Made by a program: the position numbers and the translations under genes. A stretch of 62,787 bases of DNA, counting the filler, from Choristocarpus tenellus KU-1152 (Eukaryota; Protista; Phaeophyceae), in assembly GCA_964200185.2 (NCBI GenBank). It is 10 parts of 10 records of this genome, joined end to end, with 100 filler letters (N's around TTAATTAATTAA, not from the genome) between each part and the next. Parts side by side here need not be neighbours in the genome. Positions count along the whole stretch, not along the records: positions 41,408 to 51,035 come from CAXNAD020003520.1; 9 more parts are not named here. One strand, 5' to 3'. Below, in pieces: positions 41,862 to 51,671 of the stretch. Every line of letters starts with the position of its first letter. The stretch's first letter is position 1. The notes beneath the pieces were generated by a model, which saw only the letters and a list, made by a program, of their open reading frames with translations, did not search any database and was not told where the DNA came from.

Positions 41862-44800
41862 TTCCTCCAGAATTTGACGAAGCTCAACCTCTCTGTAGGG
41901 CAAAAATGAGACAATTGGGCATCTTTGACCTGGTTTGACATGCCCAAAAGAGAGTGCATAACCCTCATCGAGTGATGATATCTGGAAAGAGGTACGCATG
42001 GATGTGTGCAAGGGTGGGTGTGTTGTGGGAGTACAAGGGGCGTCAAAGTCACTCTTGTCCTGCAGAAGATAGTACTTGACATCAGTCAAATGAATGAAAG
42101 AGTCTTAGAGGGTACGAGTTTTTCCCTGCTTGTCCATTTGGGGCTTGGCTTCCCACGGATATTTAATGACACTTTACCTACTCCAAAATTGTTTGAAATA
42201 GATAAAATGTATACGTTATAAAAAGGAGTGTTCGGAACAAGGATATTGACATCTCCTAACAAACATGACAGACAAAATTACATCAAAATGCAACATTGGA
42301 TTTTGGCCCCAAATGGACACGGCTCTACCCTCTAAGATACTTTGAATCAAATCCAATGTGCAGCAGGGGATCTGGTTGGTGTGGGTGTGGATGATGAATG
42401 GGTTAGTGCTTTTGGAGAAATCACAGTAGTAGCATGTAGTACAACAACCTACTGTACACACCATGCCTATCACGACGAAAGGAGAGTAGCGCTTGAAGGA
42501 CAGGTCGAGGAGTCTAGTTCTCACTCCTACCTCAAGTTCTTCAAGGTCTTCCAAGCAGATCTGGCACGTACAGCAACAATAGGACGCAAACATAAATGTG
42601 AAAAGGTTCAGCAACAAAATGAGGGATATTACCTTAGAACAGATCGTGATTTCTTCATTTTGCAATATTTAAGTTTCTCCGGAATGTCCCATGGCTGATA
42701 TGCAGTCTATCCACTTACCCCCCACCAAGATGAGTGTTTCGCAATGGGAGAAGGCGCCGTGGAAGGAGATTATATTAAAGAGAGGATAATGTTGTTAGCT
42801 CAACGATATTAATACTAGCATACACTGTATGTCGTTTGTTGGATGTATCAGGGAGATTTGATCAAATAACAGGCTACTCCCAAAGATAATTTCCTCAATA
42901 GTCAAGTTAGGTAAGGTCACAAGTGCCCCTCTAAGTGGCATAGTGGCAGCATGGGGATTTGCTGAAGGCTGAGGCATGAGCTGTTCAATGCTTGACTATT
43001 ATAGGTGGGTGTGCACATGAATTTCAGTACATCAATACTTTGTGAGGTGAAGCATGTGCCCCTCATTGATCACTGTAGAAGTGAGCGGAACAGGAGGGAT
43101 GAGGATACGGCTGACTACTATGTAGTACAGACAATTGAAGCCCATTCGATGTGCACTCTGGAGCACAAGTAGAATACAAGGAGCCAAGAGAACCAGTCAT
43201 TAACACTCTGTGTTTGTTGTCGCTCTTGTTCTTCCCTGTTACAAATGCAGTCACCCCCATTTTACAAGTTGCCCATATTTTTACATTTCGATCTCTAATG
43301 CTACTGTACAAATGCCCAAGAAGCCTTTTCCATCCAGCCCTTTGACACAACTTACGACCCTCCTTGGACAATCAATACAACTAGATTTAAGAAAAGGTCA
43401 ATGTACCGACTCTTGCTGCCCGGTGTCTGGTCTACGAGCAAAGAACACTTTTGCATTAATACGCGAGCATACACTCACATGCGCTGTTTGTTGTGCCTCT
43501 CCTAAATGCCCTAAGAGAGGAGACTATTAATAACGGCACTCAACATTCACCTGGGTAGCACAGGACCAAAATCCAAAACAAAGCACTAATGTGTATATGA
43601 TCACCAACACTTGAGTACAACAAAACCTTCACCTACCACTTCCTGCAAACATTTATGGTATCACAAATGTACCCCCCTGTTCTCACCACAGACATGTGGG
43701 TGGTAGACCCAGTGACCCTCCCCAGAGCCTCCTCAGCACCCTGAGGATCAACTTCCTCCTCTACTCCCAACACTAGTGCCAGCGTCAGTGCGAACACGCG
43801 TTGACTGTTGCCCAAGTCACCACATTTTATGTGCTCAAAGCACAAGCAGTTGGAGTCACTTGCAGATGCTACAGCAGCAACCTGGGAGAGGGGTAGATGG
43901 GGAGACAAGGTTTCAGGACAGAAGAAGCATTTCTGGGCAGCATGGTGGGTAGGTACTTGCCCGTTGACCAAATCCTTACAAGACAACGTTGCAGGATGAT
44001 AGAGTCAGGTAGGGGTTGGAATCTTCTTGGGAAGGTCGGAGAGAGGTGGAGAGGGAAGAGGGATGTGAACCGTCCTACCCTGTGAGTGATCAACCAATGT
44101 GGAAGGAAGATGACGTAAGAATGCTCTCCTCTGCCACAAATTGCTTTACCTTTTCCAGAGCTTCCTGGTCCTTCCCGGTTACGATTTCAACATGATGTGC
44201 AACAGGGATATGCTTTCTCCTTCGAGCAATTCAAAACGACATCCCCCCGAGGATAACCTACCAAATCCCACCTGTTAGTCAACACCAATATCCCCTCCCC
44301 CCCCTACCCCTCTCTTTTGATCAGGAAGGATGCTTCAACAGCACATATCATTATTACTCCACGCCCTCACTAGAAAATGACAAGGTATACTGCTTTGAAG
44401 CAGCTTGCGCTGAGGACTGAGGAGGACATGTTTCAAAGCACTTTCACAGCAGAAATAATCGGGGTAAGTGTGACCTTACAGCCGGGGTCCCTTTGAGCCC
44501 TCCAATATGATGAACTCTTTGTTTCAAAAGCCCAAAGAGGCAGGGGATAACGAACATCATGCAAAAAAATTGTGACTGGAGAGAACGTTTGTGAGTCTCA
44601 GAAATTTATTACACGAACTTCTGCCAAATAGCTTCCACTCCACACCACACACCTGAGCTGCCCGGAGAGTGACAGCCTTACCACAGCCACTGGGTCCAGA
44701 CAATATCAATGGTCCTTTCTTTGACATGATGACTGATCTTGAGCCATTGTTCTAGGTGGAGGTGGCACACATGGAAAACAATTGACATGTCACCAGAATG

Positions 44801-47800
44801 TTGTTGTGGATTTGATTCAGGGAGGGGGTCTTATTTCTGGGACAATAAATGAGGTTTTTCTCCACCTTCCACAACTTGGTGGAACAACTATTTGAGTCTT
44901 CACTTACCAATGACTTCCATTGGAAGTATACCCTTTTCAAGTATTCCTTGATCAAATCCGTCTCATTGCTTCGGCCAACAATGTGAGATGTTGACCACAA
45001 AGCTGGTAATGATCCTGATGTGATCCGAGGCTTGAGAATTTCATCTAAGCGCCTCAACACCCTTGTAGCAAGTACCAGCTTCCTAGTGCTTATTTTGCCA
45101 CACAATGACACAGGTACAGCATAGGAAGGGTAGAAGGGGGGAGAGGGATAGTGTTGGTGAACAGATTGATCTGGCATGCTGAAGCTCTTGAGGGCAAAAA
45201 AACGCAATCAAGATGAGGGTGGGTAAAATAGTTGCAACGGAGGGCTGGGGAGAGAATGAGGGGAGATATTTGAAAGAATTGGCTTCTAGTTAATTGCTTT
45301 CTGACAACTGAAACTCTTCCTTTCTTCCAATGTTTTTTTTTGTGACGAAAATGAGGCGAAGTTACCACACTGATCAATCATGTTGTGCAGTATGTGCAAA
45401 AGGCCTCATGGCAGAGGGGGCACATACAGAGACGGCAACTCTCTCCACTGTTTAAGTTTTCAGTCACTATCTGGGAATATATCTGCATTTGAAACGGTAA
45501 CACTACAAAAACAAAGTTCCCCAGACAGCATCCTTTCCCTCCAAGGCAAAAGTGATGAGTAGCACGCACTGTGAACTATGTAGAATACTCTCACAAGTCT
45601 AGGCAATCATCATGAATTTCCGCAGAGAGAGTGGAGAGTAGGCGGGTGGTGGAAGCATTGTACTAGTCCCTATATCTTTCATATGCTATACCCAGAGAAA
45701 ATCCAACCCAAAATATATACCTGTCCATCCCTGAAGGAGCTGAAGCACTCCCACTGCTTGCCCCCTCTGATCTTCGCTCATTGTGAGCACGGTTGAAAAT
45801 GTTACGGTCCCTTGGACCTCGCCGGTGTTTACTCCAAGTGGAAGACCTGTCTGTGGCAGCCCTCTTCTTAGTGCCAGTTGCTCTTCCAGCACTTCCACCT
45901 TTTTCTTGAGTCACGGATGGACCCACTTCCCCTGTGGAATATCCAGCCCCTGCTACTGAACTCGCCTCAGTTCCAGTTCTTACTCCAGGCTCCACTCTAG
46001 CACGACAGAAGACATCAGGGCTCTGGGGTACTTGCGGGTGAACCTCCATCTGGTGGAAAGTAGGGCTCGGACTATCTCTAGACGGATGCAATCCAGTATG
46101 TGGGGAAGGCATTGCGCCTTGACTGGTACTATTGGGTAAGCCAGGTGAGGTGCCCATGCTGGTTTTGGTCACATCAGCCACAGAGCCAACGCATTTTGAT
46201 GTTTGTGACAACTGTGTGGATATCAGGGTGGAGTTTACAGATGGTAGATTTGTTAGGATTAGGGTATATTATTTTGTGGCAAGGCAGCACGTATAGGGTT
46301 AGTATTGGGCAGGGCAAAGCAAACGTCGTGATACCCACTTAGTTGCTGCAATGCTTGTTCATGGAAAAGATAGTGATGATGATGAAGAGGCAGTGGAGGC
46401 AGACGTGATGACAGCAGTTGCTGTACTGCCAAGGCACAGGTTTTCTCAGGACACATGGAATCTGGGTACTTGGCGTTCAAGGGGGAGTCTTCTATAGGTC
46501 AAGAATTGCATCAAAAAGTCATTGTGGGTCGTTTTCATAGCCATTGTTGCTGCTGTAGCAAAAGCGCTCGCTCATTTGGGTCGCAGGATGTGTGGGAGGT
46601 CACCCTCACATTCAACGCACTATGTCCAAACCCCCCACCTGCCTTGTCCAGTTGTCGATGAGGGGATGCTTGCAAGCTCTGGGAGATGGGTGGACGAGTC
46701 AAGTGTGGAATACGAGGAGAATAGGAGTGGGAGGGGGTAGCAGTGGAGAGGCAGTGGAAGAAGTGGGAGAAGGAGGGGGGGAGACTACCTTGTTCCTTAC
46801 TGGCAGCGGCTGAAACAGTGGCTGCGGCATCGGCAGTCCACTCTGCTGCATGAAATCAATGACCTCGTCGCTTGTTGCGAAGAAGTCTCTGCCCTCTTGC
46901 TTGAATCCTGTTTGATCCTCCTCAGGCCTCCAGAAATAGTAATTTGCCAATCCCTGCAATGGGGAAAATCCAATGACCACAACAAAAGAGAGCTGTACTT
47001 GGTCGGTGTGGCACAGAAAGGAAAAACACAGACCACTTTGAGTGTGGAGGAGCACAGGAACACGTTTTGGGGTCAAGAGTAAAGGGAGAGGAGTGTCACA
47101 GTGGAGCATGATAGCCCCCTCAGCCGTTGGACAGGAGGGTAATACAGGTACCCGTTCATCATGAGTCACCTCAACTTCCTCCCCCCTCATTATCAAGACC
47201 AGCTTCTAACACCATTGCATGGTATATCAATACCTCAATGTCAATTAGGATGTCAAAACCATACATGCAACACATTAGACTCCAATTCTGGGCCATGTGT
47301 ACGGGTTCAAGCCAAGAATACACATTTTGCTGACTTAATTATCTTCATGCCATAATGAAGAGCACCATGACCTTTTTGATACTCTGACATGTATTGCGGC
47401 ACCAAAACTGACCCAAAGTATCTGGGGGGGGAGGGGGGGGGGGGGTTCTACACCAGGGTGTCCATTTTGGGTCATTATCAGGAAAAGTGCAGTACATTAT
47501 CTATATCCGACGTGTGCAACCAAATCACCCAAAAATCGCGACATGAAAAAACTGGCCCCAAATGGACAGCTGCCACCCTCTCCCAGATACTTCGAGCCAA
47601 GTGTGAACGACAAACAGTCAGTGAAAGCAATTGTATGCATTCCGAATCAGGGCAGCCTGTTTTACTCCATGAGTTGATGTGAATGAACACTATAGAGCAC
47701 CCTGCAGAATGTGGAAGTAGTATATATGAAGCACAAACCATTCTCCATACTGACTAAGACTTAGGATAAGGTTTAGCAATCGCCACATTTGCAAATAGAA

Positions 47801-49507
47801 GAGAAATTTCTCTCTCCTAGTTGTTCGCCTTCTTTGGGTAAGCCCCAATCATGTTATCTTGGATGATATCAAATTGAGTGGGCTGTGCCTTTCTCGCCTA
47901 CTAACCACAACATTACCTGCACCTACAACTAGTCATTGAGTTCATCCCTAGTGACTGCTCTGAGTCCCCTGCAAATTCAGATTGTTCTTCATAGCACAGT
48001 CTCTAGAATACTCAGCAGAGTACAACAACAGACACCACAAACAACAATAGCTCATTGAAATGGTGATACCACATACAGTGGAAGTGTGATACGCTACTGC
48101 CTCTAGTATTTTATTGTCGGCTGCAACATTCCGTATGCTAAATGATGTTAATAGAATCAGCAGTACAAGTGCTGGTAGCTAAGGAAAATAACTTAATGAG
48201 ACCAATAGATCTAAAAATTGAAATGCTGAGAGAGTGTGAGAACAAGTCATCTGCTCTTGGAATTATCCAACCTTCCTTATCCACCTACCACTCTGAGGAC
48301 CAAAATGCCGCTTCCAACAACAACACCTTTTCGTGCCCTCCCCTCCCAACCCTCTCCACACAACGAGGAACTTCCCTCACCCTTCCTCTTGTTGACTTCC
48401 ACCCGTTGCTTGACAGATATCTCCATAGATCCTCAAAACCTTTGAAGGATATGTTGTTCCCAAAAACGAGCCGCCAAGGCTGTGATCTTCTGGAGGTAGG
48501 GGCTGCAGCCTCTTGGTCCGGCAACAGACTAAGTTTCCATTTTGAGCCTTTGGCGACGGCATCGTCGGCAATGGCGATGGCTCGGTCGAGCCCGTGTTTG
48601 CGGACTGCACCAAGCTGATAAGGGTGGTGAAGGAACAGAAAATGTCACAAGAGAGAGACGAAAGAGTCGCAGAGTGAGGCAAGACAGTGCGGTGGTGGTA
48701 TCGACAGAAGGGGAAAGAAGGAAAAAAAATTAGTAGATACGATACAGGAGGTAAATGAGTGCGTCGCACACAATCAGTGTATGCACTCCAGGCAGATGAG
48801 GTGGTCGTGTGGAGAGGGAGTGATTTACCGATCCCATATCCACCAAATACTGCAGCCGATCCAACAGCCTGCGCAGAGAGGCAAGGCCTTTCCACATACC
48901 TTTAAGTCTATTATTCACGAATTACGAGCGATATTTAGCTCTAAATGCACCCACCAGGAGAGACAAAGAAAAACCTAACGTGACCTCCTATTTCAGATCA
49001 CTCACATTCACAACGGACACCTTCCAGGACAAAACCGTCAATCATACATTCATTCTCACCTGTTGCCGCCTCATATAATCGCGTACTTCAGCGTATGGCT
49101 GCATCGTGTCTGGAGTATCGGATATAATATCCCAGTTATCATCGATCAACCTGTAGAAGGCATAAGGTAAGGGGGCGTGGAGAAGACGTAGATATCTTCG
49201 TAAAATGTATTTCCGAGTTCCCAAATCCTCCATCGAGGATCAAATCGGCGACCAATGTTGTAGCAGCAGTGCAGAATCCTCACTCTGCTTCAACTCACCA
49301 GGCCAAAAGAGTCCCCCGTGGAGGTTGAGCAGCCTCGTCTGAAACGCAAACTGCTCTCCCGATCGGGATCAAATGACCGATCCCATCTTCGACCAAGCCC
49401 GCCTCCTGGGCTGCAGACCAACTACGAAAAACCATAGCTGGCCACCATACCCTGCCTTTCTCCTGGCTAGGCCTGACCCAAGTTACGGACCCATTTGTAT
49501 ACTCCAT
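41862..49507 (-). CDS. PWWP-like domain + GW/MBD-like module + Cdc6/Orc1-type AAA+ domain with degenerate Walker motifs (3' end not resolved)
   Basis: Phase-consistent GT-AG exons: 49507-49299, 49150-49060, 48868-48829, 48604-48381, 46953-46801, (possible exon ~46680), 46211-45721, 45088-44908, 44751-44653, 43881-43687, 42560-42462, 41981-41862. Motifs: VTWVR..VWWPAMV; LWRYLSSNGWKSTRGRGLANYYFWRP..GRDFFATSDEVIDF; IVGRSNETDLIKEYL; LILSGPSGCGKA; FEHIKCGDL; SVICLEDLE; FVVIGMISSLD; VSFLPYREVELRQIL. Confidence 0.8.
42092..42348 (+). mobile_element. MITE family A in an intron, TSD AAAT
   Basis: Flanked by aaat on both sides. Confidence 0.85.
47410..47598 (+). mobile_element. MITE family B in an intron
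   Basis: aact-GACCCAAAGTATCTGGG...CCCAGATACTTCGAGCC-aagt. Confidence 0.85.
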
Positions 49508-50584
49508 TATGCTGGGATTAGGGCGCAAAAGATAGGTTACGACCTCGATTTCGCAAATTTGGGATGTCGTTTGGTCAACGTGTTGTAGGTTTTGGGTTTC
49601 GTTTTTCTCGAGTTGTGTGTGAAGAGGACGTAATAACCACCACCCCGCAGGTGCGCGATGCGCGCTTTTCCCTTATCGCACGAAATACTTTATATTCCTT
49701 GTATTTGATTTGCTTGGGTATAGTCTGATGTATTGGTATGTAAAATAAAAAAATTATAGAGTTTGAACCTCTTTCATCGTAAAATTCTTTTACGTACGGA
49801 TGTGGTTTTGATTGTCCCCTTGGTCACTTTCAGGTGGCGTGTCCAGAAAAGTCATTGTTCCCAGAGACGCCTTCCTAATCGAACTACTGTTGAGGTACAA
49901 ACAGCCGATTTTAATATATATATATATATATATTATATACATATCGACACTTTATACCAGTCAATTTGGAGTCAAGCCCATCCTCAATGAAAAGCTCCAT
50001 CCTCAATTTTTGAAATCGGCTGTTTACAGGTGTGGCCCAGAAGTTCAAGATGTAGACTGTACCTATTTTTTATCCAGTTAGTATTTGTTGCTACACCACA
50101 CCCACAACAGTCCGTCTAGGGAACTCCAAGCCAGGTCGAGACTGGAAGTGAGCATTTGTGACTCCCTCTTGTCCACCTGTACATAGATGTCTAGAACCCT
50201 CTACTACAAATAAATGTCAAAAAATATTCCCAAATAATCCTGTCTTATAGTTCAAACTCTAGAAACGTAGACATACTACGAAGATATAAAAACGTGCCTT
50301 CTTTCTGGAATGGACCGTATCTTATACAATCTTATTGTATATATTTTGGGGGGCAGGATGAAACGTACTACACAAAACGCCCCCTAATCTAGTCTGTAGA
50401 GAACCTCTCAAGACAAACACACCCCACTTTCTCTACAAGAAGCATGCTCTCCAAATGCCCTCTAGAATTGTTACTCCAAACAAAGAACAAGTTAAATTAT
50501 GCTAGAACATGCACTCTGATCCCTGGTTCACTGAAATCTCCCCCATTAATTATAGCTGTGTCCAAGTCAATACAAATGACTTCA

Positions 50585-50920
50585 AGTCCAATGCCTTGGT
50601 GAACGCATCAACATGCTAGTAGTGCTCTCACTCTTCACCTAGATGTGGACCCCTGTGTACCTGGATTACATCACGAATGAAACGATTCTTGGCATCAATA
50701 TACCTTGTCCTCTTACTGCGGTGAAAGCATTGCTTTCCAGTTTGATCAGCCCTTCATTATCCTCCATTATAGAGATGAAGTAGTTCACCATAGTAAGCGT
50801 GATTAAGTGTTACACTTGGTGCAGAAACATAACCTCCTTCACAACTTCCACCAGGGCAATGTACTGAGTTGAAGTATACAAGAGGTACCAAGAGCTGGAT
50901 TTTATCAATGCTTACAGGTA
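50585..50920 (-). mobile_element. Ty1/Copia RNase H relic
   Basis: IMEDNEGLIKLESN..VRTRYIDAKNRFIRD..VDAFTKALD, with stops. Confidence 0.75.
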
Positions 50921-51671
50921 TGTGCAAAATTCGTACTACCTCTGAGCCCAGAACTGGGCACGTTGAGGGTCAGAACATCGGCATGGCAACCCCCCTGTTG
51001 ACCCCCCACATAGGAAGGGTGTCCAAGTGTAAGATNNNNNNNNNNNNNNNNNNNNNNNNNNNNNNNNNNNNNNNNNNNNTTAATTAATTAANNNNNNNNN
51101 NNNNNNNNNNNNNNNNNNNNNNNNNNNNNNNNNNNACATCGGTGCTCAACCTTTGGCCAAAAGGGAAATGGGGGGGGGGGGGGTTACAGGATGCTTGCAA
51201 GGTGAAAGATTGATATGCTGACTTGAGAGTGACTTTCCTTGGGTGCTAGGCTGTTTGGACCCATCTCTTCTCGGTTATCTCACCACAGAGGCGTGTCACT
51301 AACCTCTATCCTTAACCCTAGCGCATCGGTGCGGAAATACCTTCGACAAGGAAGTTGTGGCAATATTAGTGGATGGGATATTAACATGCGGGATATTATT
51401 GAAACATCAACAAACCTATGTCTCGAACACTGCAGCATCCCCAGCAATTCATGACTGCTTTCATTTCTGCATTACGAATGATCATACCACCCCGAGCCTT
51501 CCATAGTAACAAGATAAAGGTCGTACTCTCGCTTCCTCCGATTGGTTAACCTCTCTCACATCAGCAAATTTTGTTACTTTCATGTTGCTAAGCGCGTATC
51601 GTTGCTCTCCATCTCAACTAAAGCAAACAAACTAGATAGAACAATTGCTGTGTGGGACACTATGGAAACAT

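Follow-up and report, generated by a model that had tools for sequence, protein, structure and literature searches.

The piece at positions 41408-51035 of the window, the whole stretch of 62,787 nucleotides (nt) analysed here, raises the question of what is encoded by a series of short open reading frames (ORFs) scattered along its minus strand. In an earlier reading made from the sequence alone (hereafter the sequence-only reading), these frames had been linked into a fusion of a PWWP domain with a Cdc6/Orc1-type AAA+ module carrying degenerate ATPase motifs, and a Sir3-like role in chromatin had been proposed. Our analysis suggests that the piece on balance probably contains the greater part of a single-copy nuclear gene with many introns, which belongs to a brown alga or close relative, lies on the minus strand and encodes a PWWP-like domain, a GW-containing module (GW module), a linker and a divergent AAA+ module. 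Judged from the spliced frame, a reader-like head and a motif-divergent AAA+ module are likely to be fused, while an assignment of the latter to Cdc6/Orc1 is no better supported than one to an RFC/Rad17-like family.

A spliced gene model on the minus strand

The piece has a G+C content of ~45%, and most of its long open frames are on the minus strand, which was read in three frames around each of the frames noted earlier. Manual splicing yielded a chain of 10 exons from 49507 to 41862, which comprises 1866 nt or 622 codons without a single stop and whose outer ends coincide with those of the sequence-only reading (Table 1). All nine introns are of the GT..AG type, the AG is mostly preceded by a pyrimidine tract, and the phases agree at every junction. 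The donors of introns 1 to 9 are GTGAGT, GTGAGA, GTGAGG, GTAAGG, GTATAT, GTAAGT, GTGTGT, GTGAGA and GTGTGT. With canonical sites, matching phases and an open frame throughout, the earlier proposal of a single spliced frame built from scattered ORFs was borne out, and every motif that it had quoted (WWPAMV, IVGRSNE, GPSGCGKA, FEHIKC, VICLEDLE, VVIGMISSLD and FLPY..ELRQIL) was found on the minus strand where it had been placed. Two of these strings, V|ICLEDLE at the exon 8/9 junction and VVIGM|ISSLD at the exon 9/10 junction, come into existence solely after splicing. The exons have a higher G+C content than the introns (0.44-0.56 versus 0.45), and G+C at first codon positions (GC1) exceeds that at second positions (GC2) in both halves of the gene.

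Three sequencing runs of unrecorded kind were available, of which X1 is DNA-like (even cover, long contigs) and X3 has patchy cover. In run X1 the word depth along the gene was ~15-24, except in two bins at 47230-47629 that correspond to a repeat in intron 3. The gene is therefore single-copy and not itself a repeat, and a transposon was ruled out on the same grounds. Beyond exon 10 a strong donor (GAA|GTGAGT) follows, and the 3' part of the gene falls outside the piece edge at 41408. A possible exon 11 with a good acceptor is uncertain, and it obtained zero profile support in the windowed exon scoring described below.

The PWWP-like head and the GW module

Independent support for the gene model covers exons 1-4 only. 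A HMMER library search with exon 3 returned one true relative, P0003, which matched along the full exon (E 3.7e-6, 46% identity). P0003 is annotated as an 'unnamed protein product' of 241 residues from the brown alga Choristocarpus tenellus; its gene lies on contig L001 (5 kb), and the protein is collinear with exons 1-4 at 41-51% identity by tblastn and 30-52% in a MAFFT alignment. By tblastn, exon 1 was 51% identical to residues 1-68 of P0003 and exon 2 matched the corresponding exon of L001 with an E value of 9e-6. The boundaries of exon 3 are identical in L001, and the start codon and all three introns lie at positions equal to those of exons 1-4. A second relative, P0006, was found on Logan contig L002 (SRR23274493; 57% GC), in which exons 3 and 4 have their counterparts in one ORF, with an exon 1-like exon upstream. 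On this evidence exons 1-4 form a conserved unit of coding sequence. Metagenome scans in which the N-terminal alignment served as query were blank. The intron between exons 3 and 4, which measures 1427 nt in the window and has the repeat inside it, is absent from or was lost in the L002 lineage.

The top matches of the exon 3 search were bacterial Kelch-repeat proteins, which share one short motif (RLxVFG..DLWxY..GW) summed over their repeats, and a Kelch protein was set aside as a chance or motif-level likeness. The end of exon 3 itself (48381-48470, RLVFG..FEDLWRYLSSNGW) resembles one Kelch blade and draws multi-repeat Kelch proteins with an E value of 1e-8 summed over 11 repeats.

The N-terminus had been read as a PWWP domain. 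The motif and the strand order are present, with V-W-W-P-A-M-V followed in order by LLAW|LIDD, WDIIS and MQPY and with hydrophobic strands and a C-terminal helix. Against Pfam PWWP (PF00855), P0003 covered positions 1-92 of the 93 in the profile (E 2.9e-5), and its 24.9 bits fall just under the gathering cutoff of 25.6, such that the domain is to be called PWWP-like rather than PWWP. Exon 1 aligned weakly to the PWWP domain of DNMT3B over G-x-x-W-W-P-A-M-V (E 0.063). No PWWP match was obtained when the window exons were searched singly against Pfam, and no PWWP chain was returned by PDB searches that used P0003 residues 1-125 or a three-species profile (A1). We regard the N-terminal domain as probably PWWP-like on the basis of these alignments. 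The Phe of G-F-S-W-W-P in DNMT3B faces an Arg in the window (G-R-V-W-W-P) and a Lys or Glu in P0003, while both Trp residues are kept. If the three aromatic-cage residues for methyl-lysine are those of DNMT3B, the first cage aromatic faces this Arg, and a methyl-lysine reading is therefore uncertain.

Both the GW module and the disordered linker of the sequence-only reading were recovered, the former with conservation in relatives. The GW module consists of ~75 residues at the end of exon 3 and in exon 4 and is well conserved in three species (alignment A2: window, P0003 and P0006); by this alignment its conservation extends to at least three genomes of stramenopiles. Searches with P0003 and P0006 gave no Pfam match to the module at E values up to 10, and the three-species profile gave no PDB match. 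In the ESM Atlas, its nearest clusters were oomycete and diatom hypothetical proteins (0.90, 0.85 and 0.84), followed by MBD-containing clusters (0.78 and 0.75). The likeness to MBD (PF01429) is a weak lead, as a profile test did not recover it. The linker encoded by exon 5 is probably disordered, and no relatives of this exon were found.

The AAA+ half and its relation to initiators and clamp loaders

To place the AAA+ half, comparisons were made exon by exon against 58 archaeal Orc1/Cdc6 proteins (Pfam-checked) and 29 giant-virus RFC small subunits, with small DnaC/IstB-like and sigma-54-activator families as controls. The collinear chain from E6 to E11c scored well above shuffled exons with both the Orc1/Cdc6 (z 5.0) and the RFC profile (z 4.6), compared with a z of 0.6 for each of the two control families. 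In hmmsearch against the Orc1/Cdc6 profile, exon 10 matched the F-p-P-Y..L..IL block with 1 of 1000 shuffles scoring as high (p ~0.001) and exon 7 matched Walker A with 5 of 1000, while exon 8 fell in the right place without reaching significance.

Scores were then taken within the expected profile windows, with 200 shuffles per exon, and each motif fell where the profile would have it. Exon 6 obtained 11.3 bits with Orc1/Cdc6 (37 of 200 shuffles as good) and 12.6 bits with RFC (11 of 200), and exon 7 obtained 15.4 bits (1 of 200) and 23.6 bits (0 of 200), respectively. Exon 8 matched Orc1/Cdc6 through its VVYVNC..YRVLA..ELGEEV part (14.4 bits, 2 of 200), whereas nothing above shuffles was seen with RFC. 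For exon 9, neither profile rose above shuffles. Exon 10 gave 22.8 bits with Orc1/Cdc6 (0 of 200; profile positions 207-223) and 14.2 bits with RFC (3 of 200), the latter by placing QRC on SRC. The sums of 77.4 bits (z 5.7) for Orc1/Cdc6 and 76.3 bits (z 5.6) for RFC are equivalent, and at the level of these profiles the module is an AAA+ of the initiator or clamp-loader kind for which Orc1/Cdc6 and RFC score equally. The Cdc6/Orc1 module of the sequence-only reading thus stood as far as its collinearity with the Orc1/Cdc6 profile is concerned, but its family assignment did not, the order of motifs being common to clamp loaders.

The strongest single match of all, that of exon 10 to the Orc1/Cdc6 FpPY..L..IL block, would be expected if the protein were an Orc1/Cdc6 paralogue that has lost its ATPase activity and acts in silencing or origin targeting in the manner of Sir3, with PWWP replacing BAH. 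The module shares with Orc1/Cdc6 proteins (archaeal; ORC1, CDC6, ORC4/5) a lead-in helix with (V/P)-x-R, the P-loop, a beta-2 strand ending in C, a long helical stretch and F-x-P-Y..L..IL, and the windowed matches of exons 8 and 10 are significant, exon 8 matching the initiator-type beta-2/helical region and not RFC. The spacings lie within 1-6 residues of the archaeal profile; those from beta-2 to Walker B (50 versus 51 in the profile consensus) and from sensor-1 to FxPY (23 versus 23) are nearly the same. However, the total is no closer to Orc1/Cdc6 than to RFC, the P-loop exon prefers RFC/Rad17, and the spacing from Walker B to sensor-1 fits RFC better. Moreover, no BAH domain is present: where ORC1 carries one, the window gene has a 390-residue extension with the PWWP-like domain and the GW module. 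The archaeal controls clearly show the Cdc6-type lid (PF22703/PF22606) and winged helix (PF09079) that define the family, whereas the corresponding part of the window gene lies beyond the piece edge. We consider such a Sir3-like, ATPase-dead Orc1/Cdc6 paralogue unlikely.

Exon 7 points in another direction. Its P-loop matched T2SSE first in Pfam, then Rad17 (17.7 bits) and AAA_22, with weak matches to AAA_16 and nSTAND3, and in NCBIfam TIGR00602 (rad24) was the top match, with RFC subunits lower down. The best family match of exon 7 is accordingly Rad17/Rad24 (top in NCBIfam, second in Pfam), an outcome that the sequence-only reading had itself listed as speaking against it. Together with the 23.6 bits against the RFC profile, this is what an RFC-like large subunit (Rad17/Rad24 or another alternative clamp loader) would show that has gained a chromatin-reader head and works with RFC2-5 at marked chromatin. 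As in the RFC/Rad17 family (RFC1-5, Rad17/Rad24, Ctf18, Elg1/ATAD5), the gene has a GPSGCGK P-loop, an IVG-type lead-in that fits RFC slightly better (exon 6), an R-C motif located six residues ahead of F-x-P, and a fitting spacing from Walker B to sensor-1. RFC-family large subunits typically bear N-terminal extensions that bind DNA or chromatin (BRCT in RFC1), and we know of no PWWP domain in the RFC/Rad17 family. The GQRC-x4-F-x-P segment also aligns with SRC-x4-F-x-P of RFC. However, Rad24/RAD17 and Rfc1 are without the SRC motif (Rad24 structure paper, PMC9010301), so that the QRC match is no argument for a large subunit. RFC small subunits are marked by a short stretch from beta-2 (ELNASD) to Walker B, a DEAD-type Walker B and an SRC arginine finger. 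Exon 8 has no RFC match, the distance from beta-2 to Walker B exceeds that of RFC small subunits by 17 residues, the P-loop contains Ala, and exons 6, 8, 9 and 10 gave no Rad17/rad24 match in Pfam or NCBIfam. A clamp loader with a reader head is in our view a tentative and rather unlikely reading.

The catalytic motifs deviate from the canonical forms, as the sequence-only reading had noted. Walker A reads GCGKA, in which the Lys is kept and Ala replaces Thr/Ser, Walker B reads LEDLEE with ED for DE, and the sensor-1 position reads ISS, with Ser instead of Asn. The GK[TS], DE and sensor-1 Asn of active ORC1 and CDC6 are therefore all missing. An Arg is present in GQRC of exon 10. These residues suggest weak or no hydrolysis, and nucleotide may still be bound. 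Human RAD17 has GPPGCGKT and a Walker B ..VEDLP.., the latter resembling ICLEDLEE; on this lead, ED could be a family trait rather than a sign of decay.

If the protein is built as modelled, the PWWP-like and GW modules would hold it on nucleosomes or DNA, and the AAA+ module would bind nucleotide, hydrolyse it poorly and dock onto other AAA+ subunits, either ORC/Cdc6 or RFC2-5; the docked complex would thereby be brought to marked chromatin. Yeast Sir3 offers a parallel by analogy only, with a nucleosome-binding N-terminal domain and an AAA+-like module with non-canonical ATPase motifs, although its N-terminal domain is BAH and not PWWP. Sir3 originated in budding yeasts when ORC1 was duplicated. 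A Sir3-like pseudo-ATPase is thus a speculative hypothesis. In its strongest form, brown algae or a subgroup of them would have independently built a Sir3-like factor from the AAA+ of an initiator or clamp loader. This factor would have given up ATP cycling, would sit on nucleosomes through a PWWP-like domain and a GW domain specific to stramenopiles, and would serve as a mark of origins, heterochromatin or sites of damage in a lineage largely without cytosine methylation; we deem this decidedly improbable.

The weak AAA_16 and nSTAND3 matches of exon 7 also bring to mind a STAND-type (NACHT/NB-ARC-like) NTPase with an N-terminal effector-like region, as in brown-algal signalling or immunity NTPases. 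In such proteins N-terminal adaptor domains precede the NTPase, and the acidic EDLEEL past Walker B resembles the NACHT D-G-x-D-E. However, the Orc1/Cdc6 and RFC profiles already account for the order of the exons with z above 5, and no C-terminal repeats are visible in the piece, which makes a STAND protein improbable.

Partial precedents exist for the proposed architecture. MBD5 (MBD plus PWWP) pairs PWWP with another small module that binds DNA or chromatin, although it has no ATPase and the order of the domains is reversed. ATAD2 (AAA+ plus bromodomain) carries a histone reader on an AAA+, but belongs to the classical clade, has intact motifs and bears its reader at the C-terminus. If the two halves form one protein, an AAA+ of the Orc/Cdc6 or clamp-loader type carries a PWWP-like reader together with another conserved module, a combination, and indeed a protein, of which we found no description in the literature searched. 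It would then show how a multicellular stramenopile lineage ties its replication or checkpoint machinery to chromatin marks, and would provide a named candidate for brown-algal genetics and chromatin immunoprecipitation. Should the AAA+ instead be the RAD17 or an ORC subunit of the lineage, the gene would be an ordinary orthologue that is unusual in its N-terminal extension. Even so it would be useful for annotation, since the databases hold just a truncated N-terminal fragment from one relative.

The proposed link between the two halves and a probable antisense transcript

Several observations weigh against the reading as a reader-AAA+ fusion. Exon 5 is the sole physical link between the two halves, and the joining of exons 4, 5 and 6 is deduced from phase-compatible splice sites. 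Read-through of the exon 4 donor meets a stop after 36 codons, and the P0003 model likewise stops shortly past the equivalent of exon 4. In exon-level searches of Pfam, NCBIfam, PADLOC and PDB no match was found for exons 6, 8, 9 and 10, the P-loop of exon 7 alone being recognised, and that generically. Searches for protein relatives of exons 6 and 8 were blank, with a length window that may hide longer relatives. Of the lid, exon 10 encodes just the initial 17 residues; the remainder lies beyond the piece edge at 41408, as would a winged helix or the collar domain through which clamp-loader subunits join the pentamer, and the C-terminal domains are missing. The AlphaFold (AF2) models of P0003 with A1 and of the GW module with A2 both reached a predicted local distance difference test (pLDDT) score of 45. 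Finally, no RNA run was found on record for the sequence, and the only spliced contigs found on the locus, which come from run X3, are antisense. A metagenome scan with exon 8 was also blank, and an ESM Atlas search with this exon gave no usable match. Exons 6 and 8 likewise found nothing in scans of viral contigs, and since the gene has nine introns there is no sign of a phaeovirus origin.

The break after exon 4 would be explained if the locus held two genes, a short PWWP-GW protein made of exons 1-4 and ending 36 codons past exon 4, and a separate NTPase gene downstream, and exons 4-6 are spanned by neither an RNA nor an orthologue. However, the Choristocarpus contig ends 640 nt beyond the P0003 model, which is therefore taken to be cut off by the assembly. 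In addition, the exon 4 donor is usable, the exon 5 acceptor is good and in the correct phase, exon 5 lies within the longest ORF of the piece, and the gaps between exons 4 and 5 and between exons 5 and 6 are short (589 and 638 nt). For these reasons a single gene in which exons 4, 5 and 6 are joined is likely, and two separate genes are quite unlikely.

The antisense contigs define two introns in which both X3 joints fit GT..AG on the plus strand only, each with a good pyrimidine tract. Contigs of X3 also cover sense introns 5 and 6 in unspliced form. The first joint connects 43943 to 44324; the second is found in a 1048-nt contig that joins 46140 to 46648 without mismatch, its donor lying inside exon 5. 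A coding gene on the plus strand was rejected, as the antisense exons contain no ORF above ~75 codons. These joints are most simply read as those of a non-coding antisense RNA that is spliced and runs across the middle of the gene, extending at least over 43.9-47.3 kb. The sense gene could on these data be silent or decaying, with the antisense RNA as the expressed product, in keeping with the non-canonical catalytic motifs and with the lack of AAA+ relatives in our searches. Yet all 10 exons are open and all 18 splice sites are kept, and the 41-51% identity (tblastn) of the N-terminal half implies purifying selection. X3 is, moreover, of unrecorded kind, and one sample says little about silence. 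We therefore give a silent gene little chance and retain the fusion gene as the preferred reading.

Table 1. Exons, motifs and other features of the locus (positions refer to the window).
Feature	Positions	Strand	Description
Exon 1	49299..49507	-	Start codon 49507-49505; first half of PWWP-like domain; donor CTG|GTGAGT, ends in phase 2
WWPAMV	49447-49430	-	In exon 1, V-W-W-P-A-M-V
Exon 2	49060..49150	-	Second half of PWWP-like barrel (LIDDNWDIIS..MQPY); strong pyrimidine tract, CAG acceptor
Exon 3	48381..48614	-	PWWP-like C-terminal helix, short linker, first half of GW module (..FEDLWRYLSSNGW..)
Exon 4	46801..46953	-	Second half of GW module (GLANYYFWRP...GRDFFATSDEVIDFMQQSGL)
Exon 5	45721..46211	-	~163 codons; S/P/G/T-rich linker with basic KKR..HRR..R patch; within the longest ORF of the piece (201 codons)
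Exon 6	44908..45082	-	Helical lead-in to P-loop (..SHIVGRSNETDLIKEYLKR..); carries IVGRSNE
Exon 7	44653..44751	-	Beta-1 strand and Walker A GPSGCGKA (44697-44674); Lys kept, Ala for usual Thr/Ser
Exon 8	43687..43881	-	Beta-2 strand (CFEHIKC) and helical stretch ahead of Walker B
Exon 9	42462..42560	-	Walker B position ICLEDLEE (42560-42537), ED for usual DE; then strand PFVVIGM
Exon 10	41862..41981	-	Sensor-1 position ISS (without Asn), GQRC, then IVSFLPYREVELRQILEE, the start of the lid domain
Possible exon 11 (uncertain)	41611..41697	-	VVLSAGFERY..NIGNDLSLSG; good acceptor
Antisense intron	43945..44324	+	X3 joint 43943/44324; GT..AG, pyrimidine tract
Second antisense intron	46145..46651	+	X3 contig joins 46140 to 46648; donor inside exon 5
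Short repeat element	47409..47599	.	~190 nt, inside intron 3; 23-nt terminal inverted repeats (I1/I2), G-run; non-coding

The repeat element in intron 3 reaches a word depth of up to 2e5, compared with ~17 elsewhere, and many contigs break there; it is probably a very abundant repeat of this genome resembling a miniature inverted-repeat transposable element. Rfam and tRNA scans gave no matches. At position 45472 in intron 5 all three runs have A where the window has T, which reflects an error in the assembly or else a difference between strains. One member of the RFC profile set, an IMG/VR contig of 335,593 nt (L163), carries an RFC small-subunit-like gene at L163:7000-7977 that is unrelated to the window gene. 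A short TA-rich microsatellite at ~49880-49950, some 400 nt upstream of the start codon, translates as IYIY runs in several frames.

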